Source of the DNA: Hemiscyllium ocellatum
Lineage: Eukaryota
Length of the DNA: 64,000 nucleotides
NCBI RefSeq assembly: GCF_020745735.1
Contig: NC_083413.1
Span: 80,697,612 to 80,761,611, forward strand
Direction: 5' to 3'
Notes under the pieces: generated by a model
Databases searched by the model: none
What the model was told of the DNA's origin: nothing
Seen by the model: the letters and a program-made list of their open reading frames with translations, nothing else
Made by a program: the position numbers and the translations under genes
Shown: positions 12,770 to 52,282 of the stretch, piece by piece
Numbering within the stretch: position 1 is the first letter of the stretch
Layout of the letters: the number at the start of each line of letters is the position of its first letter

Positions 12770-13295
12770 GCTCGGTGAGCTGGAAGGTTCATTTTCAGAT
12801 GTTTCATCATCATACTAGGTAACATCGGCAGTGAGACTCTGGCTGAAGCACTGGTGGCATGGCCCGCTTTCCATTTATGTGTTTAGGTTTCCTTGGGTTG
12901 GCGATGTCATTTCATATGCTGACATCATTTCCTGCCCCCCCCCCCCCAAAGTGGGTGGTAAATAGGATCCAAGTTAATGTGTTTGATGATAGGTTGGATG
13001 CTATGCTTCAAGGAATTGTTTGTTTGGCTTGTCCTAGGATGGATGTGTTGTCCTAGTCGAAGTGGTGTCCTTCCTCATCTGTATGTAAGGATACTAGTGA
13101 GAGTGGATCATATCATTTTGTGGCCAGTTGATATTCACGTATCCTAATAGCTAGTTTTCTGCCTGTTTGTTACAGTTCTTGCACGGTAATTTGTAAATGA
13201 CATTAGTTTTCCTTGTTGTCTGTATAGGGTCCTTCATGTTCATTAGCTGCTGTTTTAGTGTGTTGGTGGGTTTGTGGGCTACCAAGATATCTGAG
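12770..13295 (-). mobile_element. Penelope-like element 3' fragment (second family)
   Basis: HKPTNTLKQQL..KDP....NVIYKLPCKNC GIY-YIG-type motif; degenerate hammerhead region at about 12795-12835. Confidence 0.75.
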
Positions 13296-13299
13296 GCTT

Positions 13300-13730
13300 T
13301 CTCCTCGCCACTGCCCCCCCCTCCCCACCACACCCCCTCCGACTATCCCTCCCCTCCCCACCCCCAAACACCCCCTCCCCACTCCCCCACCCCCAAACAC
13401 CCTGCCTCACCCCCCTCCCCCACCCCCAAACACCCTGCCTCACCCCCCTCACCTCCGCACCCCCTCCCCAATCACCTCCACCTCTGCCCCACCACTCCAC
13501 CACACCCACCCACCTCTGCATCCCCTGGTTCCACCCCCCCAGCCCTTCCCTCACCTCCGCCCCGACCCGACCCACCCCACCCCACCCTCCTCACCTTTGC
13601 CCCCGCCCCACCTCCACCCCCTGCCGTCCTCATCTCTGCCCCCTCCCCACCTTCCGCCCCCTCCCCTGTCCCCCTTCCCACCCGCCCCGCCTCCCCTTCC
13701 CCTCCACACTCTCCCCTCTTCCTTACCCCC
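13300..13730. repeat. C-rich low-complexity tract (G-rich on the SAP130 sense strand)
   Basis: About 430 bp of C-runs, with a short tandem duplication CCCCCAAACACCCTGCCTCACCCCC. Confidence 0.85.
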
Positions 13731-14170
13731 CCGAGTCGGGCCTCACTTTGTCACTCCTCCTCTGTCATTAACACAGTGCCGGAGCTCACGGTGCGGATGT
13801 GAGTACCCCCTCCCTCCGCCGGGGTGGGCTGGGGGCGAGTTACCCACCTGACCCTCTCCTCTGGTTATCTTGCTGTTGGGGTTGAGATCGCGGGCTTCTG
13901 TCCGTCTTCACTTCCCGAGGCTCCACCGCCCCTCGACGGCCTTCCCAACAACTGGACAGCGGATTGGCCAGACCTCACCGCCTCCTGTATCGCTATTGGT
14001 GGAGGCGAGCCCGGCCGCCGAACACCGCCCGCCGCGATTGGGTGGAAGCGCCCGGAGCCGACCTTGGATCCCGGCTGCCATGGCAACCGGCGGCCGCGGG
14101 CTGGTCCCGCAGGGCCCTCTGGGAGGTGTAGTCTTTTGCATACTTCCGGTACCTGTTGTTGGAGGTGAGA
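13730..14170. promoter_or_regulatory. CpG-island promoter of SAP130, likely bidirectional
   Basis: CpG-rich. Three CCAAT boxes (ATTGG on + at 13963, 13995, 14037). RFX X-box GCTGCCATGGCAAC at 14074-14087. ZNF143/SBS-like ACTACACCTCCCAGAGGGC on minus at 14114-14132. ETS/GABP ACTTCCGGT at 14142-14150. Confidence 0.8.
13848..13920 (-). other. SAP130: Probable SAP130 non-coding first exon
   Basis: Minus-strand donor CAG|GTGGGT at 13847 inside the CpG island, just downstream of the CCAAT boxes. The transcription start position is approximate. Confidence 0.5.
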
Positions 14171-15229
14171 TACTGTCTTCAGGAGCGAGTATCGATGTCA
14201 AACACTAACTCTGTTTGTTTACACCGGATGTTCCCTGCAGTTGCGTATTGTTTCTAAATGAAATTTGAGATCACCAGCCTCTTGCAGTCTTTATTCTTCT
14301 CATTAAAAGGCTGAAATGAGCGAGCTGTCTGTCCCCAGTGGGGCCTTTACTGAGTAGGCCCTCCCTGGAGCCTGGACACCGAGTGAAAATGGCCACTGTA
14401 GAAGATACCAGCCCCAGGGATTCACCATGGGATTCTCCCCCCCCCCCGAGAGTGTCTCCTCCTCCCCACCCCATTCCCCCAAGCAAAATGTCCCCCAGAA
14501 ACTGCCTCTCAAAGCCCACCGTCAAACAAAGCACATGAAGGGTTGACAAAACAGAAATGGCTTGAAAAAACAAAGAAGAGTAGCTGGACCCAAAACCAGT
14601 CACTTTGCTACTCTTCTCCATGGACGCTGCCAGACCCGCTCCATCAGTTTCTGGTTTTACTTCTGACCACCAGCATCTGCAGTTCTTTTTTTGTAATCAT
14701 TAAGCATTGCCAACCATGCCGGGATCCGTGTGATGCCCCGGCTGCTCTGCACTCACTCAATAAAGTGGACAGGGGTGTGTGGTCACTTGGGTACCAAAGG
14801 CTCACATTTTCATCACAGGGCTGTGGCTGCATGTCTCATCATTCGAACACCTCAGGCACCCCAGCACATGCTGGATGGTTCACCAATTGCACGTGGTTTT
14901 ACACCTGAAACTTCTTGACCAAAGAGCAAATGACCCCTGAGCCAAGACATCCAAGTAAAGCGCAGTGGGCCACTGTAAATAGGGTGGATGTTCAAGTGAC
15001 CAGAGTTGAACCACATTGGCTGGATCAGGAGAGTGCTCTGCAATCTTGGTTACAAACCACATCTCAGCTCATCTGACTGTAACCTCAAATCCACATTTCC
15101 CCCATATCAGTGATAATCTTTCACCTCCTTCCTTGACAAGAATTTATCTATGCCTGAAAAATATTCAATGGCCCTGGCTTTGACTGTCTTTAAAGGAAAA
15201 GAGGGTCAAAGAGAAATCTCGGGTGATTT

Positions 15230-27311: not shown

Positions 27312-28178
27312 CTGACTTTCAGAAGGATCTGTATGTGGAAATGTTTACTGAGCAGGGCAACCATTGCTGACAGATGACGTGGGGAACACCAGGGATCCGT
27401 GAGGGAAGTTTCAATTGTATTCTTTCACCTAGCTCCCAGATCTTCCTGCCACTGCTTCGGAGAGCTTTAGTTCAAAGGCAGGATAATGTGGCAAATGCAT
27501 TAATTGAAAGCATAAGTAGCACTGCCACTTAAATAGAAAAAACTGACCATCCATCACCTGGTCTGCCAAGTTATGCTCTGCACACCCACAGCTTCACTCG
27601 ACTGAGTAAATCAAGTTCAGAATTCAATGCAGCACGTTTTAGAGAAACCACATAAAATCACATCAGCTTCTCTACAGGAGACAAAAACATTGGCTCCCAG
27701 AAGGAAAACCCAGGTACTGGCATTAGTGTAAAATCAGCCTGCTGTGATATGTTGTGCACTGTTATATAATTCATGAATAATGGGTCATAGCACAGGTAAT
27801 GCTAGTCAGGATGCCTGATGCCAGTTGGTCATCTGTCATTATGGTCATAGATTTAGCAGTCATGGCACCCATATGCATTAATGAGTGTGGTGCTCTATAA
27901 TATAGGTAGTTGCCCAAATAGGATTTATTAGGTCAGTTGTGAAGAACTAAAATGAAAATTGCATATGGAAAAGCTCCTGAGGCTGGCAGGGGCCCCTGGT
28001 GCTTGTGTGGGTGAGGGCCCACAGCCATCTTATTGGCAACATCAATTGAAGCACTCATTGAAGATTCTGAAACCTATTTTATTGGAAATCTAAATCATAA
28101 CAGCGTACACCACTCTATGAAAATGGCAACACTTAAAAAAAAAGACATTAATAAAAATGCAGAGTCCCTCCCTCCTCT

Positions 28179-28330
28179 TCACTGTGACACCGACTCTTGT
28201 GCTAGGCTGCTTTTTCTCGTTCTGTTTAGGTCCATGATCTTCTCTGATATATAACCATGGACCCGGGCTTGCTCCTTACAGACCCCTTCAGTACTCATCC
28301 CCTTAGATCTGAGGTAGTGGCCGTAGCAAG
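28179..28330 (-). CDS. BEND5-like coding exon 6 (BEN domain C-terminal helices, stop codon)
   Basis: Long polypyrimidine tract then TTCAG acceptor. Encodes ACYGHYLRSKGMSTEGVCKEQARVHGYISEKIMDLNRTRKSSLAQESVSQ*. Minus-strand AATAAA at 28083-28078. Confidence 0.88.
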
Positions 28331-29144
28331 CTGAAGATAGGGAAGAAAAGGGGGGGGAATATAATTAATGAAGTCATAGTACTGCAGTGTGAATTAAATA
28401 ATATTTTACAGAAAGGGTTTACAACAGGGATATAATGACACCTTACAAGCTAATACAATAAGACACATTTTGACAGGTGTGAACCTGGAACACCATCAGA
28501 AATGATTGGAGGGGAACCTTGTACACCCCAAAGCCTATATCAGCCCTTGGCAGCAGACTAGAGAATTTAAACAGATTTCTGTGCACAGGTTAAGAGAAAG
28601 GACAGAGATTTCTGGTCATTGTACAGGAATGAAATGAAAACAATGACGGCAGAGAGTCTGAAGAAGCCATTCCAGACTTGAAATATTTACTGTTTCTCTC
28701 TCCACAGATACTACCAGACCTACTGAGTTTCTCCAGCTATTCTCTGTTTGGTTTAGATTTCCAGCATCTGCGGTAGTTTGTTTTTTTTAAAAAATACATT
28801 TTTATTTATTTCAATATTACAACAATACAAAACAATATAATCAAAACAGTACAAGGAAAGTACAATAAAAAAACCAAACTACACTCGTGTACAAACATAC
28901 AAATCTATATACAAAAAACTAAATATGTAAATAAATAATAACAACTAACTAATGAATAATAATAATAATAATAATGTAGCTCAATGAGACAAAACAGTAG
29001 TTCTCAGCCATCAAGAGCATTAATTTACACATATCCATACATTCGCAGTTCCCCCTCTCTTGGTATTAAACTCTTAAAACCCAATCATTACAGCTATATA
29101 ACAGATCTGTGTCCAGGTAGTCGAAAAAGGACTGCCATGTCTTA

Positions 29145-29460
29145 TTAGATTAGATTAGACTTACAGTGTGGAAACAGGCCCTTCGGCCCAACAAGTACAC
29201 ACCGACCCGCCGAAGCGCAACCCACCCATACCCCTACATTTACCCCTTACCTAACACTACGGGCAATTTAGCTTGGCCAATTCACCTGACCCGCACATCT
29301 TTGTGACTGTGGGAGGAAACCGGAGCACCCGGAGGAAACCCACGCAGACACAGGGAGAACGTGCAAACTCCACACAGTCAGTCGCCTGAGTCGGGAATTG
29401 AACCCGGGTCTACAGGCGCTGTGAGGCAGCAGTGCTAACCACTGTGCCACCGTGCCGCCC
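29145..29460 (-). mobile_element. HE1-type V-SINE (tRNA-derived), young full-length copy nested in the L1
   Basis: tRNA-like head GGCACGGTGGCACAGTGGTTAGCACTGCTGCC, V-domain TGTGTGGAGTTTGCACGTTCTCCC, (TCTAA)n tail. Confidence 0.9.
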
Positions 29461-31562
29461 ATAAAATTCTCAATCTTATGATGCACCATTGCTTGTAAGA
29501 AAATCCAAAGGGATATGCTCGACAACTGTCTTATGCCAACCCGACAAACTCAAAGGATTTTTAGACACCCAATCTAATAGAATATTCTTTCTTGTGCAAA
29601 AAGTAAGGATGTTGAAAAGTTTTTTTCCTTATGCGCATTTACAGGGAAGAAGAAAAATCGAGTCCACCTCCTCCCTCGTCCCAAAGATCCTCTCTATTGC
29701 ACCTACCACAGCGCTCCAGTACATTCGGAGCCTGCAGCAGGACCAGGGACAATGAGTGAGAATGCCCGCACTCACTTTGCACTTGGGACATGTCGAAGAT
29801 ACTCCTGGTTTAAATTTTGATAAACTATCTGGAGTCAAGTGGACTCTGTGGAGAATCTTCAACTGTAAAGCATGGGTCTGATTGCAAATTGAGATCTTTC
29901 TTGCATTCTCCTAAATAGCTTGCATGTCTCCGAGGGGATCTCGACACCCAACTCTCTCTCCCACACCCTGCAAAGCTGTTCAATCTCACCCCCCCCACCC
30001 CCCAAAAAACAGATGATAAAGAGTGCTGACAGAAAGCGTGTTCTTAGCATTGAGCACCCCCTTCTCTATGTCAGATCTGTACAGATCGGTTGAAAGTGTT
30101 GTCCTTTTTTGAATGAAATCCCTAATTTGAAAAAAAAAGGAGATCCCTGCTAGATAGCTTGTATTTCCGTGCTAACTGGTCAAATGCCATCATTGTGTTC
30201 CCCTCAAATAAATCACCCATGCAAGACACACTCCTAGCTGTATCGAGAGAGTGTTACTGGAAAAGCACAGCAGGTCAGGCAGCATCCAAGGAGCAGGAGA
30301 ATCGATGGTTCGGGCATAAGCCCTTCAGCTGCCCAAATTTAAACTCAGAGTCCACCATCCCTGTTGAAAACCTGGCACACTCACTATAGCTGAAAAAAAA
30401 ATGTTTTGGCAATATTGCCTGCAATCTGCCACACGGCCCTCCATGCTTTAACAGTTTTAATAACTATTGGGTTGTGGCAATATTCCTTAACTGTCGTCAT
30501 TTTGTCCAGGAACAGCACGAGAAGTTTCAATATCTAATCATATTGAAAGAGGGTCCCTACAAGCCCAGTCACTCACATAAGATAAAAGCGAGCTTAGATG
30601 ATAGTTTTTAATGTCCAGGAGATCCACTCCCTCCAGTCCTTGAGTTTAGCTAAGTTAATAAGGGGCTGCTTACAATGCCAGATAAAAGCTGAACCAGCCG
30701 CTCAGTTTCCTGAACATTTGCCTAGTGAAAATCAGGGGGAGCACTCACATAGGGTACAATAGATGGGGGAGAATGTTCATTTTAATGAGGGCTATCCGAC
30801 CTAACCAAGTAACCGGAACCACCTCCCATCTGCGAAGATCTTGTTTGATTTTGTCAAATAAATGAACAAAATTAGGTTTAAAGAGCTGATCAAAAACTTG
30901 AGTAATGAATATGCTCAAATAAAGAAAGCCCCCTGTGACCAATTAAAAGGGAATAGAGATTCGCCCTCAAAACCTAGAACTTTCGTGAGACCACCCATAG
31001 GCATAACCTCTGATTTTGCAAAACTGATCTTGTAACCCAAAAAGGTGCCAAACGAATTGCTACATTGTATCAGACGAGACACCAAAACTGCTGGATTTGA
31101 CACAAAGACAGGGACGTCATCTGCATACAACAAAATCTTATATGATTTTGACCCCACTTCTGGAGCCAATATATTAGGATCCCTACAAATGGGCTCCACC
31201 AGCAGCTCGATCACCAATGTAAAAAGCATGGTGAAAGGGCACAGTCCTGTCGGCCGCCCCTAAAGATATTAAAATTGCTTGATCTCACACCATTGGTGAG
31301 AACCACGGTGAGAGGATAACTATAGAGAACCTTATAAAAGTTCCACCCAAGCCAAAGTGCTCTAGAGTATAAAAAAGGTACGGCCACTTGACCTGGTCAA
31401 ATGCATTCTCTGCATTTAGAGAGATCACCAATCGCTTAAATTACAATAAGCAACTTCCGAACATTATTGGAGGAACAGTGCCCCTTTATAAATCCCGACT
31501 AGTCTTCTTTAATAATAGAAGGCAACAACACAGTTTCCAGCCTTAATGCAAGATGTTTTTTA

Positions 31563-31860
31563 TGATTAGATTCCTTATAGTGTGGAAACAAGCCCTTCAA
31601 CCCAACCAGTCCACACCGACCCTCCAAAGAGTAACCTACCCAGACCCATTTCCCTCTGACTAATGCACCTAATACTATCTAGCACGGCCAATTCATCTGA
31701 TCTGCACATCTTTGGATTGTGGGAGGAAACCAGAGCAAACCCACGCAGACACGGGGAGCATGTGCAAACTCCACACAGACAGTCGCCTAAGGCTGGAATC
31801 GAACCTAGGGTCCTGGTGCTATGAGGCAGCAGTGCTAACCACTGAGCCACTGTGCCACCC
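31563..31860 (-). mobile_element. HE1-type V-SINE nested in the L1
   Basis: Same head, V-domain and tail as the copy at 29145. Confidence 0.88.
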
Positions 31861-33996
31861 AAGTTTTGGAAAAGATTTTAAAATCAACATTTAAAAGTGA
31901 AACGGGTCTACAGGCAGCACAGTCTACTGGGACTTTCCAGTTTTTAAGCAGGAGAGGTACTGGCCTCTCTTAGAGCTGGGGGGAGGGCGAGCATGACTGT
32001 ATGAGCATTAAATGTGTTGAGCATCGGGGCTGACAATATGCTCGTAAATTCCTTATAAAATTCACTGGGAAATCCATCAGGACCAGACTCCTTTCCATTC
32101 TGAAGCTGCTACACAGCCTCCTGCACCTCTTGCTCTGATAAGGAGCATTGAGAAAACAACTCTTGTTCAGGGGGTTACACCTGGAAGCTCCAAATTCTTG
32201 ATAAAAGACTCCATCCTAGCCCGCCCATCCTCACAAACTTCAGACTGGCAAAAATCTCTGAAATGCCGCATTGATCTTTTTAAAATCACAGGTTGGGTTT
32301 CCAGCAGATTCCCTAATCGACATAATAGACTGGGGGGAGCGGGGTGGGGGGTCACTCTTTTTCCTGGCAAGCACTTGCCTGGTTTGTCACCATGCTCAAA
32401 CAAGCTTTTGTCTTGCAAAAGCAAGCTTCTTCTTTCCTGTCTGCGTGAGCGTGGAGTTCAATGCAGACCGAAGCACTTAGCCAACAAGGGCCTGTCAGAG
32501 TAAGCCTTCTCAGCTGCCTTCAACCATGCTTCAGGCAGACATTGCTGTTCACCCATCTGCCGCTCCCCACTGGTGGAATGGGAATGGACTAACCCTCTGG
32601 CATAAGCTTTAGCTGTTTCCCAAAGAACAGACAAAAAAACTAGCCAAACCTGAACTAATGTCTAGAAGTGCCCTGTATTCATTAGAGGAATACTCCACAA
32701 ACTTACTATCCTTAAGGATTAAGGGATTCATTTACCAGTGCCTTAGACGCGCTACAGGATTTCCTTTTCCGAATTAGCGCCACGGAGAAGTCCTGGAAAA
32801 ATATGATCCTACAGCCCTCATAAACTAAGGCCTTTAGATCCTTCCCCTGGACTCTGGAAGCTTTCATGATTCTCTGCTTTGTCTCTTATAATTGTGGAAC
32901 GGCACCAGGATAGGGCAAGGATGTTGGTCCAGACCTGGCCTCCAAGCCGTGACCCAATGAGCCCTCTCAATCTTCAGACCTCCCATTCCAGCCTCCAAGT
33001 TAAGGAATTTCAGCAGCCAATCCTCAGTAAATTCCATTGGTTGCTCACCTTCCTTACTCTCCGGCAAACCAACCATCCAAATATTTTTCCTCCTGCCTCT
33101 GTTCTCATGATCAATCAACCCAGTCAAGCAAAGCACGGACCTGCATCTCCTGGGCCTAGATCCTATCCTTGGAGGAATCAGTCTCAGCTTCTACCACTGT
33201 GACCCTGCGTTGGACCTCGTCCGATCTTTTCCCTGAGGTCTCCCAGCTGCAGCTCGTCTTTCTGAAGCATCACAGAGATCAGGGCCAGCTTCTCCAATTT
33301 GCTTACCCAGCATCTCGCGAGATTTCGTGAGTTCCGATACCAGGGCCAAGTCAGAAATAGCATCTGAGGATCCTGTGGGTTGGGCTGTGGTCCCAGCCTC
33401 AGATGAGCCTGCTTCCTTCTTAGGCATCCCTGGACGGCATGACCCGCAGATAAGTGACTTCTTAGAACTTTCTAGAACTCTGTGACCTTTTCAGATTCCT
33501 AGAATACCACAATGACTTGGGTAGGGTGGGTTAGGGCTTTGTCCTGCCCGCGATGCAGTGCGGAGCTCTGCAAAGAGATCTTCCTAGATTGCCACCATCT
33601 TGGTTCGCCCAGTATTTTGCTTTTATTAGAGCATGAAAGTTGTTAATTTTCTGAGTGTATCAGACTGATCTGGACAGAATGATCTGCTTAGCCAGCTTGA
33701 GACCCTCTCTCTGAGTTTCATGAACAGCAATTGTTGGAAAAGCTCAGCAGGTAGACAGAAATCAGAGTTAATGCTTTGGGTTGAGTGACCCTTCCTCAGA
33801 ACTCCCTCTGAGTTTGTTTGAGTAAAGACAACTTTGATCTGCAAACATTAGTCCTCAGTGATCTGTGTAGGAAACTAAGCACAACAATGTGAATGGTACA
33901 TTCAAAGCTGGCATGATGTTTAGGATCCTGAAGGCTAGGTATCAAGGGCATGTAAGGGTAAACATAAATGCAATTACAGTTTGCAATTGAGCTTAC

Positions 33997-34222
33997 CTTT
34001 AACAGCACTCAGTTTAACAGGAGAAAGTGCAGGTTTCGGTACCGGAGGTGTGTCCGCGTTGATGAAGCGGGCACACACTCTACCATGAATCGACCTATTA
34101 CGGAGCACGTCCGAGCCCCATACAGCGGCAGCCAGGGTCTTGACAAACATCGAGTTTGTCTTCGATCGCAGAACATTTTCCCATTGGCGCTCTGTAATCT
34201 CCAGACCACCCTGAAGTTGAAC
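33997..34222 (-). CDS. BEND5-like coding exon 5 (BEN domain, N-terminal part)
   Basis: CCACAG acceptor. Encodes VQLQGGLEITERQW...AVWGSDVLRNRSIHG...PKPALSPVKLSAVK. Donor AAG|GTAAGC, phase 1. Confidence 0.9.
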
Positions 34223-34389
34223 CTGTGGCAGAAAAAAAGTGTACACACCGGTTTTCTGCTGGAAATAATGCAGTTTAGTGCACTGTGAACATACAGAGGC
34301 TACATACACAAAGATGAGATGCGGAAGACTGCGGACAGAGTCCAATTTTTAACATCACAGCCGCCATACTACAGCTGCACCATTACTTG

Positions 34390-35285
34390 GTGCAATGTGA
34401 TGATAATTAGTGGTATAGTGGGCAGTGAATCTGATCATCTAAAAGCACAACAGGATCTAGATCAACTGTGCCAATGGGCCAAGGAATGGCAAATGGAGTT
34501 TAATTGAGAGAAATGCGAGATGTTGCATTTTGTTAAGACAAACAAGGGCAAAACTTATACTGTTATTGGGAAGGCAAGTTCTCGACCAGAGAGATCTAGG
34601 GGTTCAGGTACACCATTTCTTGAAAGTGGAGTTGCAGTTAGACAGGGTGGTGAAGAAGGCGTTTGGCACGGTTGTCTTCATTGGTCAGAGCATCGAGTAT
34701 AGGAATTGAGATATCATGTTTCGGCCATACAGGACATTGATGAGGCAAGTTTTGGAGTACTGCATACAGTTCTGGTCACCCTGCTGTAGGAAGGATGTTA
34801 TTAAATTGGAAAGGATGCAAAAAAAGATTTACCAGGATGTCACCAGGACTGCAGGGTTTGAGTTATAAGATGAGGTAGGCTGGGACTTTTTTTCACTGGA
34901 ACGCAGGACTTTTTTTCACTGGAACGCAAGGAGTTGAGGGGTGACCTTATTGAGGTTTATAAAATCATGAGGCGCAGAGATAAGGTGAATAGCCAAGTGA
35001 TTTTCCCTAGAATGGGGGAGCTCAAAACTAGAGGACAGTGAGAGGGGAAAGATTTTAAAGGGACCCGAGGGGCAACATATTTACACAGAGTTCATGTCTA
35101 GAATGAGCTGCCAGACGTAATGGTAGAGAGTTACTACATTTAAGAGATATTTGGACAGGTACATGGATAGGGAAGGTTTAGAGGGATCTGGGCTAAATGC
35201 AGGCAAGGAGGACTCGTTTCGTTTCAAAATCTTGTCGGCATGGACAAGTTGGGCTGAAGGGTCTGTTTCAGTTCTGTATGACACT
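34390..35285 (+). mobile_element. CR1/HER1 LINE 3' fragment in BEND5-like intron 4 (antisense to the gene)
   Basis: QQDLDQLCQWAKEWQMEFN, LEYCIQFWSP, and a HER1-type 3' tail. Confidence 0.85.
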
Positions 35286-35293
35286 ATAATTAC

Positions 35294-35451
35294 CATTCCA
35301 TCGATAGGAATATAGAGATTGTCTGCACAGGCGCTGGTCTCTCCGTCCGTGCCAGTGAATGTGGGTGAAGGCTCCGTATTCATCTGCACTGATCTGGGCA
35401 GTGCTGGTCTCGTCAGATTCACGGCCCGTCTGGACAGTGCAGGTTGGCGTG
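35294..35451 (-). CDS. BEND5-like coding exon 4 (linker)
   Basis: TTGTAG acceptor. Encodes SRQPALSRR...LYIPIDGM. Donor ATG|GTAATT, phase 0. Confidence 0.78.
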
Positions 35452-35562
35452 CTACAACACATAGCAAATAGAAAAAAGTTAGCTCCTTATTCTCAGCTTC
35501 CCCAGACTTGAATCTAAAACATGAAATCACACCATCACATATTCAGCAAACAGATCAGTTAC

Positions 35563-35923
35563 ACTGCGCGCGGTTTAGGAGTTGCTCTTGGAGTCGACAG
35601 TTGAGGTCCTGCAGCTGGTCCATTCTCTCCTGCAGGCGACGGATGATTCTTGTAGCCTCCTGCAGGTCACTGTTTAGGGACTCCACCTTCTGCCTGAGGA
35701 CTTTGTTCTCAGCTTCCACCTGCATGAGCCCTGGTTTCCTTTCCTGCCAGTCATGTCCAACCATCCTTGGTGGAATGGTCATCTCATTCACAAACCCTCC
35801 TGATACAGAGAGGGCATCTGTCATATTCCCCCGAGCACAGTCGGGCATCTCGGTCTTAAAACCATCTATTAGCCTCTGCAGATGTTTTCTCCATGCACTT
35901 TCTGTCCGAGCTCTCTTATCCTT
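35563..35923 (-). CDS. BEND5-like coding exon 3 (coiled coil)
   Basis: TTGGCAG acceptor. Encodes KDKRARTE...ENKVLRQKVESLNSDLQEATRIIRRLQERMDQLQDLNCRLQEQLL. Weaker donor T|GTAACT, phase 1. Confidence 0.8.
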
Positions 35924-36075
35924 CTGCCAACAAAGAGAAATTGAAGGTTACCTTTTTGGCATGGGTGAGAGATACGGCTCCATACATCAAGTGGTACTCT
36001 TTATTAGATGTGTCTCTGCAGTTTGCATTGTTGACCATATCTCAACAATTCCAAATGAATGGCTTAAGCACCTAC

Positions 36076-36233
36076 CCTTGTCACACCGGTGACCTCCAAT
36101 GCTCTCTTCCCCTGTATGTTTCTGCTTGGGCCAGGCCCATCACTGGCACTGTCTGATTCCACATTGCTATCCCAGGTAGGATACTTCAGCAGTCTATGTT
36201 TAGCTCTTTCTGCTCTGATCTCTTCAGGGGACT
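36076..36233 (-). CDS. BEND5-like coding exon 2
   Basis: CTCCAG acceptor after a 77-nt intron. Encodes ESPEEIRAERAK...VTGVTR. Donor AGG|GTAGGT, phase 0. Confidence 0.8.
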
Positions 36234-36310
36234 CTGGAGATGAGATCACAAAAAATTTAATCAATATCTCATCATCAAACACAACTATTATCTCAGATGA
36301 TCACACTTAC

Positions 36311-36548
36311 CTGCCAGAAGCATGATCTGTGCTTTATAATATGGATCATTGGAGCTCCGCGTATATTCACCAGAGTTATAGTCTTCTGACTTGCCAATGC
36401 TCGCCTGGATCCATCGAACCATATATACCCTGCTGGGATTGTGGGTCAGGAGCTTAAACTTTTGGATGTCCTCCTGAATGGACACAATCCTAGATACCCC
36501 ATTGTCATCAAGGAATCTGACAAATGCAAATTTTGCGACTGCCGCCAT
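36311..36548 (-). CDS. BEND5-like coding exon 1
   Basis: Kozak ACAATGG. Encodes MAAVAKFAFVRFLDDNGVSRIV...PYYKAQIMLLA. Donor CAG|GTAAGT, phase 1. Confidence 0.88.
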
Positions 36549-36682
36549 TGTATCTGAATGAGGTGGAAAACATTCAAAAATTACATCCAAAGCAGACTGT
36601 TTTCAACTAACTTTGTAAAAAGATTTAATTTCCAGCAAAAAATGCTGCCTTTAGTTTCCCCGGTTGGTTTCGGAAATCTTAC

Positions 36683-36751: not shown

Positions 36752-36876
36752 CTGCATAGAAACAAGCACACAACAATACCTTTACATACTAATATGAGTA
36801 AGCATATATCTGTTTCTTAAAATCTTTTCTAAAACACACCTTACATGCAGCACTTCCACATAATGAAGGGAAAGTG

Positions 36877-37489
36877 CCCATCCAGGCGGGAAAACCAGTA
36901 AAACTTGTGAAGGATGTATACTGGTCTGCTGCAGTACAACCAATGTATTAATTTCCAGGTACCTTTTTTTTAAAAAGAAAATTTTGTTTTTCACTTCTGA
37001 GTGTGCTTATTAATTCATTTGAAAATAGACCCTTCAAACAAAGATAAAAGGTGGACACCCACTGCTGAGCACAGTTTTTTGAAAGACTGGGCAAGTTTGC
37101 AACATTCACTGTGACTGCTGGCCTCCCTAGGCCCCTTTCACTTCTCCAGTTTGTTCTTCTAGTAGAAGTCCCATCTCTCTGTGTTCAGTTCTGCTGTGGA
37201 GTGATTAATAAATTAACATTATCTTCAAATGATTAACAATTATTAAATTAATAATGATGAAAATGCAACAACATCAGTGATAAAAAGAAACAACAGTGAA
37301 CAAAATTAAGATTTTTTTAAAAAAATTGTGTGGGCTGCAAAAACCTGCCCAGTGGGAAAAACCAGTAAAAACAACACAGGTGGAAGTAAGCGTACTGGTC
37401 CTACTGGTCGTCCATTTTGAGGGTATACAAGATGAGTCAGACCAGTATGTGTCATTCACAACTTTTACTGGTTTCTCCTTCTGGGTGGG
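36877..37489. repeat. 52-bp imperfect inverted repeat (TIR/MITE-like) between the two divergent genes
   Basis: 36877-36928 matches the reverse complement of 37438-37489 at 42/52 positions, ungapped. A third partial copy CCCAGTGGGAAAAACCAGTAAAA is at 37348-37370. Confidence 0.75.
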
Positions 37490-37679
37490 AACAAAAATTG
37501 TCTAGGCAGCAAACAAAAGGACAACAAAAATTGTCTGGGTTGCAAGGAAAAAAAAAGGCCCGTGCATTCATGTTTGTATTAAAAAGAATAATTAACATAA
37601 TGTAGTGAATTTGATAGTATTGTGATGAGTGTTATTTGTTCTTATAACAATCTTCAGGGAATTGAGTGAGAAACTGTTT

Positions 37680-38370
37680 GTTGCCACGCGGAACGCAAGC
37701 GCGGGGCCCAGGTTTGCCGCCGGGGCTTCTTTGGGCGGTGCACCAAGAGGGGCGGAGAGGTGCAACCAGCTCCCCCGTCCCCGCCCACCAGCTCCACTTC
37801 CGGCACGGCGTCATGGCGGCCGAGGTGTCGGATCCCCTGGAGGAGGAGCTGACCTGCCAGGTGTGCCTGGAGGTTTACACCGAGCCGGTGATCCTGAGCT
37901 GTAAGCACAGCTTCTGCCGGGGCTGCCTGGAGGCGGTATGGAGGGAGGCGGAGGGTTACTCGTGCCCGCAGTGCCGGGCGGCCTGGGCGGACAGGCCCCG
38001 CCTGGAGAAGAACTTCCAACTGGCCAACATCGTGGCCGGTTACCTGGCGCTGGAGCCCCGCCACGGCGTCGTGCCCTGCACCTACTGCACCAAGAAGAGG
38101 CGCTCGGCCCTGAGGAGCTGCCTGCAGTGTGAGGTGTCCATGTGCTCCCTGCACCTCCGGCTGCACCAGGAGAACGCGGTGCTGAAGGGCCACCCCCTGA
38201 CCGAGCCCACCGCGGACATGGCGATGGCCAAGTGCGCGCAGCACCACAAGCTGCTGGAGATCTACTGCAAGGACGATGCTGCCTGTGTCTGCAGCCTCTG
38301 CGCTTTAATAGGAAGCCACAAGGGCCACGACTTAATCAGCATCAGTGAAGCAGCGAAGGAGCTGAGGGTA
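37680..38370 (+). promoter_or_regulatory. CpG island over the TRIM promoter and first exon
   Basis: Sharp rise in GC and CpG content, GC boxes (GGGCGG, CCCGCCC), and ETS site CACTTCCGG at 37795-37803. Confidence 0.75.
37813..38367 (+). CDS. TRIM exon 1 (RING, B-box1, B-box2)
   Basis: RING LEEELTCQVCLEVYTEPVILSCKHSFCRGCL...CPQCR; B-box1 CTYC...SCLQCEVSMCSLHLRLH; B-box2 CAQHHKLLEIYC...CSLCALIGSHKGH. Donor AGG|GTATGT. Confidence 0.95.
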
Positions 38371-39744
38371 TGTCTGTCTGTGTCTCTGTATGTGTGTCTG
38401 TGTGCATCTCTGTCTCTGTCTGTGTGCATCTGTGAACTGGCCAAGTTTCATTGACAGCGGGTCATCTGTGGACTCTCATACATAATGCAGTAGAATTAGC
38501 ACATGAATACATGTACAAGATGCGTCTGCACCAGGCAGGTGTCATAGCATGTCTGAACAGATTTATTAAAATATCTTACAAATAAGCCCTTCCAGTTTCC
38601 TTCCTATAACCTGAGGCCTGCACAATGCAGCACATTGTTATTACGAACTGAGTCAGCCTTTCGGCCCCTCAAGACTTGCCATCATTCTCTAGATTCATGG
38701 CTGATCTGACATTCCTCATTCTGGATTAGTGGTGCTGAAAGAGTACAGCAGTTCAGGCAGCATCCAAGGAGCAGCAAAATCGAAGTTTCGGGCAAAAGCC
38801 CTTCATTAGGAATAAAAATGTCAACTCTCCCCTGTTTTCCCTGTAACCTTTGATTCCCCTCCACATCAAGAATCAGCCTACCTCAGTCTTAAAGTTGCAC
38901 AGTGACTGCTCCCCACAGGTCTCTGTGTTAAGTAGTTCCAAAGACACAACCCTCAAGAGAAAAACTACACCTCATTTCAGTTTTAAATTGAAACCTCTTT
39001 ATTCTCCCCCTCTGGTCCTAGACTCTCCCATGAGAGTCCTGTCAGCATTGACCCTGTCAAGCCCCTTAAGAATCCTATAAGTTTTAATCTCTCATTCTTC
39101 TCAATCCAATGAGAAAAGTGCTTTGATTGTGACCCCATATCCATTTTCTTCCCTGTTCCCCCTCTTCACTTTGGTTCCATTGTCAGGAATCTCCACCGTT
39201 TTTTCAAAAAATGTCCAATAACCCAGCCTCCACTGCAGCATAGGAAAGAGAATTTCACAGGCAAACAACTGAGTGAAAAAGTTTATTTCTTAATGTCTGT
39301 CTTAAATCTTTGTCTTAGTCTAAAACTGTGGTCGCCCATCTATGTCCTCAAGTACCAATGAGTTTTATTTGTATAGCATAGCTTTGATAGTTGTGCAGAT
39401 CTTTCAGTTAGATCCAAGAATATTTGGTTAATTAATAATCATCATGATAGCTGGTATTGAATTGGGTTAATATAAATAAAACAAGTAATTGTAACTCCAT
39501 AGTTACAGACAATCATTGAATTGAAAGCAGAATAAAAGAAAGTACTATACAATTATGAACGTTTAAGTTAATATATGAAAAATGCAGATCTCTGTAATTT
39601 ATAGAATAAAAATTAAAAGTTGACTAATACTTATGTTAAAACCTGAGTCTGTTGATTTTTGTTTCATTCATCATGTACACTATTTATACATTTAAAAATA
39701 ATATAACAACCTGGAATGATTTTATCTCTGCTGCTTCATGTTAG

Positions 39745-51743: not shown

Positions 51744-52282
51744 ATGGCCAATCACCAACTCTCGATCCAGACACAGCAAACCCATACCTCGTTCTGACAG
51801 ACAACAATAAAACAGTGTCGGCGTCGAATTACATCCAGGTGTTTCCGAAAAGTACACAAATCTTTGACCGGTGGCCCCAGATCCTTGGTGCTAAGGGTGT
51901 GAGTTATGGCCAGTCTTACTGGGAGATCCAGGTGAAGGATGGTGACGGGGCCTGGAGCATTGGAGTGTGCTACAAGAGTATCAACAGGAAAGGAGAGGGT
52001 AATGACTGTCTGCTGGGGTTTAATGATAAATCATGGTGCATCCACTCTGGGCCAGATGCCCTATCAGGTCTACACAACGGCAGGAGAATTGCAGTGAAGG
52101 CAGAGAAACCCTCCACAGTTGGAGTGTATATCAATTTTGAAGGTGGGATAATCTCCTTCTACAGTGTGCCAGGGAGTGAACTCACCTTGTTGCACACCTT
52201 CAATGGAAGATTCACTGAGCCTCTCTACCCAGCCCTGCGGGTCCGAATGGGAGTGACCCTGTCCCTGTCTGTTCTGAAGTGA
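51744..52282 (+). CDS. TRIM exon 6 (PRY-SPRY/B30.2)
   Basis: GACAG acceptor. Encodes YGQSPTLDPDTANPYLVL...QSYWEIQV...WSIGVCY...LGFNDKSW...VGVYINFEGGIISFY...FTEPLYPAL. AATAAA signals follow at about 52658, 52671 and 53894. Confidence 0.95.

Follow-up and report, generated by a model that had tools for sequence, protein, structure and literature searches.

The window analysed here, a stretch of 64,000 nucleotides (nt) of contig NC_083413.1 of the epaulette shark, Hemiscyllium ocellatum (positions 80,697,612 to 80,761,611), carries a gene of the BEND5 family on its minus strand. The reading in which we place considerable confidence is that this is an intact and conserved shark BEND5-like gene, retained in addition to canonical BEND5, with a proposed role for its product as a dimeric DNA-binding factor. 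It adds an ordinary member to a known family; mildly unexpected are only the scattered copies of the gene in the genome and the N-terminal barrel of the protein.

Joining of the six exons gave 1293 nt, corresponding to 430 codons followed by TGA, and the product was identical, residue for residue, to XP_060690978.1 (P0161), "BEN domain-containing protein 5-like isoform X1" of H. ocellatum. The six-exon frame of 430 amino acids, the canonical splice sites and the phases described in an earlier note on this DNA were thus confirmed. All five introns begin with GT, end with AG and include a pyrimidine tract; their lengths are 77, 152, 111, 1071 and 5666 nt, the first three being the tiny introns already reported, and their phases 1,0,1,0,1. 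Polyadenylation signals (AATAAA) are located 96 and 250 nt beyond the stop codon. The list of open reading frames (ORFs) contained only fragments because the gene is spliced. The same note had regarded the gene as hidden and undescribed, neither of which holds, as RefSeq already models it, under the name "BEND5-like", in five orectolobiform sharks; with exon 5 as query, the protein-cluster representatives also yielded a shark protein at 97% identity. No paper mentioning the gene was found in the literature searched. It is therefore a RefSeq-listed but unstudied family member, not a hidden gene.

A separate, canonical BEND5 was found in the same genome at C4:26.51-26.54 Mb, in agreement with the earlier proposal that the window gene is not the BEND5 ortholog. 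Scyliorhinus BEND5 (P0171, XP_038665700) had its best match not in the window but at C4:26511181-26537434, exon by exon, with 81-94% identity, while the window gene was 43% identical to it in the BEN core and about 26% identical overall. The introns of the C4 gene are located at the same five aligned places and in the same phases as those of the window gene: two introns are in phase 0, one following the acidic exon and one, of 96 nt, preceding VHIG, and three are in phase 1, following AQILALG, the coiled coil and VQIIK. Exon 1 of the window gene ends at this canonical boundary, after AQILALG. The correspondence in intron positions and phases previously claimed for BEND5 was checked on the shark's own copy and holds. 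Based on the five common positions and phases, BEND5 and the BEND5-like gene are paralogs at the DNA level. They have in common the FVRFL...KAQIL barrel, the acidic linker, the coiled coil, one C-terminal BEN domain, six coding exons and the phase series 1,0,1,0,1, whereas the window gene differs in lying on another chromosome, in having other neighbours (SAP130 and a TRIM gene, between which it is located) and in falling outside the BEND5 clade. The intron preceding the BEN core, 96 nt in BEND5, was probably 200-290 nt in the ancestor of the window gene. In C4 BEND5 this tiny intron (C4:26532219-26532301), immediately before the BEN-core exon, is found in a genome of 4 Gb and in a gene whose other introns span kilobases.

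Human BEND5 is nested in AGBL4. Using the PF18027 and PF00246 profiles, an insensitive search, no cytosolic-carboxypeptidase exon was identified near C4 BEND5 (~26.5 Mb), and the Scyliorhinus BEND5 locus has no overlapping AGBL4 call. Elsewhere, at C8:113.00 Mb and C53:10.52 Mb, the cytosolic-carboxypeptidase N-domain and M14 domain were present in a single open frame of 278-294 amino acids; these two loci may be retrocopies, because a single frame is unlike the split exons of other AGBL-type genes.

Co-linear orthologs of 430 amino acids were identified in Chiloscyllium punctatum (96% identity), C. plagiosum, Rhincodon typus (90%) and Stegostoma tigrinum, the range of identity to the window protein being 90-96%. 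The whale-shark (Rhincodon) locus (L033) consists of six exons of identical lengths which align without gaps at 87-95% nucleotide identity, exon 5 reaching 95%. Its introns measure 78, 153, 113, 1040 and 852 nt, and introns 1-4 are 82-90% identical between the two species. Nei-Gojobori estimates for the window gene against Rhincodon gave a synonymous divergence (dS) of 0.27 and a non-synonymous divergence (dN) of 0.051, i.e. a dN/dS of 0.19. By region the ratio was 0.10 in the N-terminal domain, 0.13 in the coiled coil, 0.047 in the BEN domain and 0.3-0.7 in the linkers (0.29 for that of exon 2), and the deficit of dN relative to dS was significant (Fisher test, p=5e-17). The gene is clearly under purifying selection, as the dN/dS comparison suggested in the earlier note bears out.

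Several isoforms are recorded. A tandem NAGNAG acceptor at 35925-35921 accounts for RefSeq isoform X2, in which K133 is missing, and residues 60-79 are absent from an alternative-donor isoform. In Stegostoma tigrinum (P0001, P0144) the 78-nt intron 1 is retained in frame in annotated isoforms, adding 26 residues; in one isoform of this species a repeat-derived alternative last exon replaces the C-terminus of the BEN domain. Expression is indicated indirectly. In two runs from the same species, for which the RNA label was a guess, 0.40 of the sampled words of 33950-36600 were present, the exon share of this interval being 0.43, whereas DNA runs contained 0.83-0.87 of them. For 28060-28600, half of which is intron, the same two runs contained 0.25-0.27 of the words and the DNA runs 1.00; exon 6 was thus found in the RNA-like runs (again by a guessed label) without the adjoining intron.

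The order of domains typical of BEND5, namely an N-terminal FVRFL...YKAQIL domain, a coiled coil and one C-terminal BEN domain, was recovered in alignments with vertebrate, echinoderm and tick proteins and in the secondary structure, as had been proposed from the sequence. Exon 4 ends in the conserved LYxPxDG motif directly N-terminal of the BEN domain, and exon 6 encodes a segment with homology to the C-terminal ends of Mustelus P0003 and of echinoderm proteins. All of the invariant and near-invariant columns of a 32-protein alignment are kept (W319, S329, K333, W340, G341, L345, R348, S349, G352, L371, P373 and K375). The Pfam BEN profile (PF10523) matched P0161 with 18.1 bits (E=0.003, model positions 2-54 of 76), where the cut-off is 23.2, and exon 5 alone with E=0.0016; the scores of the Carcharodon relative P0187 (28.1 bits) and of BEND5 P0171 (43.5 bits) were both above the cut-off.

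An AlphaFold2 model, built with a 32-sequence alignment, consisted of a four-strand barrel plus helix (residues 1-91), disordered acidic linkers, a long helix (195-253) and a helical domain (300-429), with a predicted local distance difference test score (pLDDT) of ~90 across the BEN region. In Foldseek searches this region matched the BEN domains of Drosophila Insensitive (Insv; 4ix7, template modelling (TM) score 0.78) and Bsg25A/Elba1 (4x0g, TM score 0.81), both DNA-bound, with probability 1.0; weaker matches were BEN-DNA structures of BANP, NACC1 and BEND6, the probabilities over all matches ranging from 0.99 to 1.0. The modelled region therefore has a BEN fold. A single-sequence search of the PDB found no BEN structure. 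The two fly proteins, single-BEN and DNA-binding, are the best structural matches of the BEN region; they show 19% sequence identity to the window protein and lack the N-terminal barrel.

For the barrel, the top three matches among 48,161 chains were all Tudor domains: ARID4B (Z 5.5, root-mean-square deviation (rmsd) 3.2, 56 aligned), RBBP1 (Z 5.4, rmsd 3.4, 56 aligned) and JMJD2C (Z 4.8, rmsd 2.9, 55 aligned), followed by the next match at Z 3.0. Foldseek agreed weakly, with E-values >0.3. The model gives weak support to a Tudor-like barrel. When two chains of residues 188-258 were modelled together, a parallel in-register dimer was predicted with a score of 0.54, the best control reaching 0.01; contact agreement between runs was >=86% and pLDDT >=80. 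Among solved structures, 21 of 30 homodimers attained the same mark, as did none of 23 monomers.

A maximum-likelihood tree of 50 proteins was constructed, in which canonical BEND5 of Scyliorhinus, gar, one teleost, frogs and archosaurs formed one clade (support 100/97). The shark BEND5-like proteins formed another (100/98) outside it, which divided into the orectolobiform sequences (100/100) and those of Mustelus, Cetorhinus and two genes of Carcharodon (100/93); the nearest neighbours of this second clade, weakly placed, were echinoderm and tick proteins. Forcing the shark BEND5-like proteins together with shark BEND5 cost 46 log-likelihood units and was rejected by the approximately unbiased (AU) test (p=0.003), while a constraint uniting all vertebrate members was not rejected (AU p=0.093). 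Based on the tree and the AU test, the split between BEND5 and BEND5-like is older than the divergence of shark and bony-vertebrate BEND5, and the idea of a second BEND5-family lineage beside true BEND5 was borne out. The split may or may not be specific to vertebrates.

Beyond the orectolobiforms, the closest relatives are the lamniform and carcharhiniform genes, which share 86% identity among themselves over the BEN region and 46-63% with the window protein. The proteins P0187 (Carcharodon), P0186 (Cetorhinus), P0003 (Mustelus) and P0002 form the sister clade and have the same architecture, differing in length (342-379 amino acids against 430 in the window protein). The window gene is the best match in its genome for P0187. 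These genes are candidate orthologs of the window gene. Carcharodon LOC121275425 (P0002) adjoins an MTHFD1-like gene and not SAP130 or a TRIM gene; a decayed copy beside MTHFD1 or MTHFD1L, sought in the H. ocellatum genome as a counterpart of this locus, was absent from the list of exon 5 matches. The Mustelus gene stands alone on a 57-kb contig, and a copy in Megalobrama has no called neighbours. None of the other representatives, including those of echinoderms, ticks and teleosts, exceeded ~50% identity, and word-based protein searches returned orectolobiform orthologs only.

The many decayed copies of the gene dispersed in the genome had been missed by the earlier note. A protein query with exon 5 matched 51 genomic places; besides the gene itself and BEND5, 18 of the matches had E<0.001, and about half of the copies contained stops. 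Exon 6 together with the 3' untranslated region (3'UTR), searched as DNA, matched ten places at 68-84% identity. Sixteen fetched loci (L034-L049) were collinear with the gene at 66-77% nucleotide identity, the homology reaching into the intron ends and, within the 3'UTR, beyond the first polyadenylation signal roughly as far as the second, near 27910. Most copies are 5'-truncated and retain 3' exons only. Introns 1, 2, 3 and 5 are kept wherever they are covered, intron 5 measuring ~135-280 nt, while intron 4 is missing in three copies (L036, L037 and L045) and kept in one (L041). In a tree of exon 5, thirteen copies and the orectolobiform genes formed a star-like clade (99/98) that excluded the lamniform/carcharhiniform lineage, from which it follows that the copies derive from the window gene's own lineage.

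Two origins of these copies were weighed. Retroposition of incompletely spliced transcripts fits the sequence patterns somewhat better than carriage by a transposon, although no polyA remnants were seen at the copies; provided that the former origin holds, the copies would fit germ-line transcription of the gene. That the window gene is instead a domesticated or still-carried DNA transposon gene, and the copies dead elements, appears improbable. Such an origin would account for the decayed copies, 18 or more, that occur on many chromosomes and mostly keep tiny introns, for a compact ancestral gene of ~2 kb and for the multi-copy state of BEND5-like genes in ticks, sea cucumbers and some teleosts. 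However, the introns are placed as in BEND5, which is an ordinary host gene; the copies share the transcribed unit only, no common homology being found beyond it; and no transposase-like ORF was found near the 16 copies, which were accompanied by LINE (long interspersed nuclear element) fragments only. The 5' truncation, the ends near the second polyadenylation signal and the three copies without intron 4 are better explained by retroposition. The only candidate for terminal inverted repeats was a single 18-nt pair of "terminal repeats" (89% identity) bracketing the gene, and it was rejected since its right arm lies within a local inverted-repeat element of ~620 bp. That element (window 36874-37492; 55-nt arms, 80% complementary) is located between the BEND5-like start and the TRIM gene, and a further copy of its end at 27696-27713 yields the apparent repeats.

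A recent, shark-specific and rapidly diverged duplicate of BEND5 would also resemble the window gene, as the stem branches are long (0.44 and 0.68) and close relatives are known from galeomorph sharks only. This origin is most doubtful, since it is at odds with the constraint described above (46 log-likelihood units, AU p=0.003), a result that long-branch effects could still distort.

It is highly improbable that the gene is a dying or dead copy, its frame being open by chance or by an annotation artefact. Its genome holds many related pseudogenes that contain stops, and its Pfam BEN score is below threshold; against this, the 430-codon frame is open in five species, exon lengths are identical in the whale shark, dN/dS is 0.19 (0.047 in BEN), and the introns are 82-90% identical where the BEN exon is 95% identical. 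Practically no weight can be given to a relocated 1:1 ortholog of vertebrate BEND5, to which the architecture, the five intron positions, the phases and the RefSeq name "BEND5-like" might point, because canonical BEND5 occupies its own place on C4, identity in the BEN core is only ~43% and the tree position is outside the BEND5 clade.

For the intact BEND5-like gene, a mode of action can be proposed from its relatives and predicted structure. The C-terminal BEN domain would bind DNA sequence-specifically; DNA binding by BEND5 requires its BEN domain (PMC9233729), which binds the Insv site weakly in vitro, and Insv itself binds a palindrome (PMC4281564). The central coiled coil would form a parallel homodimer, so that two BEN domains could read a paired or palindromic site, and the N-terminal Tudor-like barrel may dock onto chromatin or a protein partner. 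Such a factor could, in the manner of BEND5 and Drosophila Insv, repress transcription or serve as a boundary factor. Certain points weigh against the reading as a whole: the Pfam BEN score falls short of the cut-off, the Tudor-like assignment depends on modest Z values near 5, part of the dimer signal may come from generic pairing of helices, and labelling the two runs (X1 and X2) as "RNA" was a guess. DNA binding, dimerisation and repression are themselves proposed from relatives and models.

Table. Features of the BEND5-like gene (window coordinates) and examples of its dispersed copies (genomic positions).
Feature	Position	Strand	Description
Coding exon 1	36311..36548	-	residues 1-79, phase 1 end; ATG at 36548; encodes predicted N-terminal Tudor-like barrel
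Coding exon 2	36076..36233	-	residues 80-132, phase 0 end; acidic disordered linker, pLDDT <50
Coding exon 3	35563..35923	-	residues 133-252 plus one base, phase 1; helix and long coiled coil
Coiled coil in exon 3	35737-35563	-	~residues 195-253
Coding exon 4	35294..35451	-	residues 253-305, phase 0 end; disordered linker
Coding exon 5	33997..34222	-	residues 306-380 plus one base, phase 1; BEN domain core
Intron 5	28331..33996	-	5666 nt, enlarged by repeat insertions
Coding exon 6	28179..28330	-	residues 381-430 plus TGA; C-terminal BEN helices
3' untranslated region	27905..28178	-	AATAAA at 28083 and 27929; homology with dispersed copies to ~27910
Example copy	C3:81.81 Mb		
Example copy	C2:130.63 Mb		
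Example copy	C14:59.67 Mb		
Example copy	C6:61.85 Mb		

Both neighbours named in the earlier note, SAP130 and a TRIM gene, were located. C-terminal exons of SAP130 lie on the same strand as the BEND5-like gene, just to the left of the window (C17:80657309-80677739). The TRIM gene (RING and B-box, then PRY/SPRY) occupies window 37666-38454 and 51815-52282 on the plus strand, its start lying ~1.1 kb upstream of the BEND5-like start in a head-to-head arrangement which was also observed in C. plagiosum and Rhincodon, so that a bidirectional promoter may serve both genes. A GC-rich segment at 13197-14200 (GC 0.52), in which both strands carry long proline-rich ORFs, probably represents the first exon of SAP130 together with its CpG-island promoter.

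Intron 5 measures 852 nt in the whale shark, ~135-280 nt in the old copies and 5666 nt in the window. It includes copies of a SINE (short interspersed nuclear element) at ~29142-29470 and ~31549-31865 and a LINE reverse-transcriptase fragment at ~30915-31229, and appears to have grown from ~150 nt by such insertions. Within intron 4, ~780 nt (34498-35278) represent a repeat present at many other loci.

A wider history may be tentatively suggested, although we consider it rather unlikely as a whole: a second BEND5 lineage of ancient origin, dating back at least to the jawed vertebrates and perhaps a whole-genome-duplication twin of BEND5, would have been kept in galeomorph sharks only and would have become, in carpet sharks, a prolific source of intron-bearing copies. 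If true, this source would mark a germ-line-expressed chromatin factor with a past selfish or mobile phase. A literature search on BEN domains and transposons returned nothing relevant.

The practical value of these results is modest. The name "BEND5-like" should not be taken as BEND5 in shark expression studies, and the decayed copies will cause spurious BEN-domain matches in scans of shark genomes. Vertebrate BEN-solo factors, of which BEND5 and BEND6 are the examples met here, have been little studied. Common to the BEND5 family is a conserved N-terminal barrel, putatively Tudor-like, which does not appear in the one BEND5 domain scheme examined, and sharks retain a further, strongly constrained gene of the BEND5 type.

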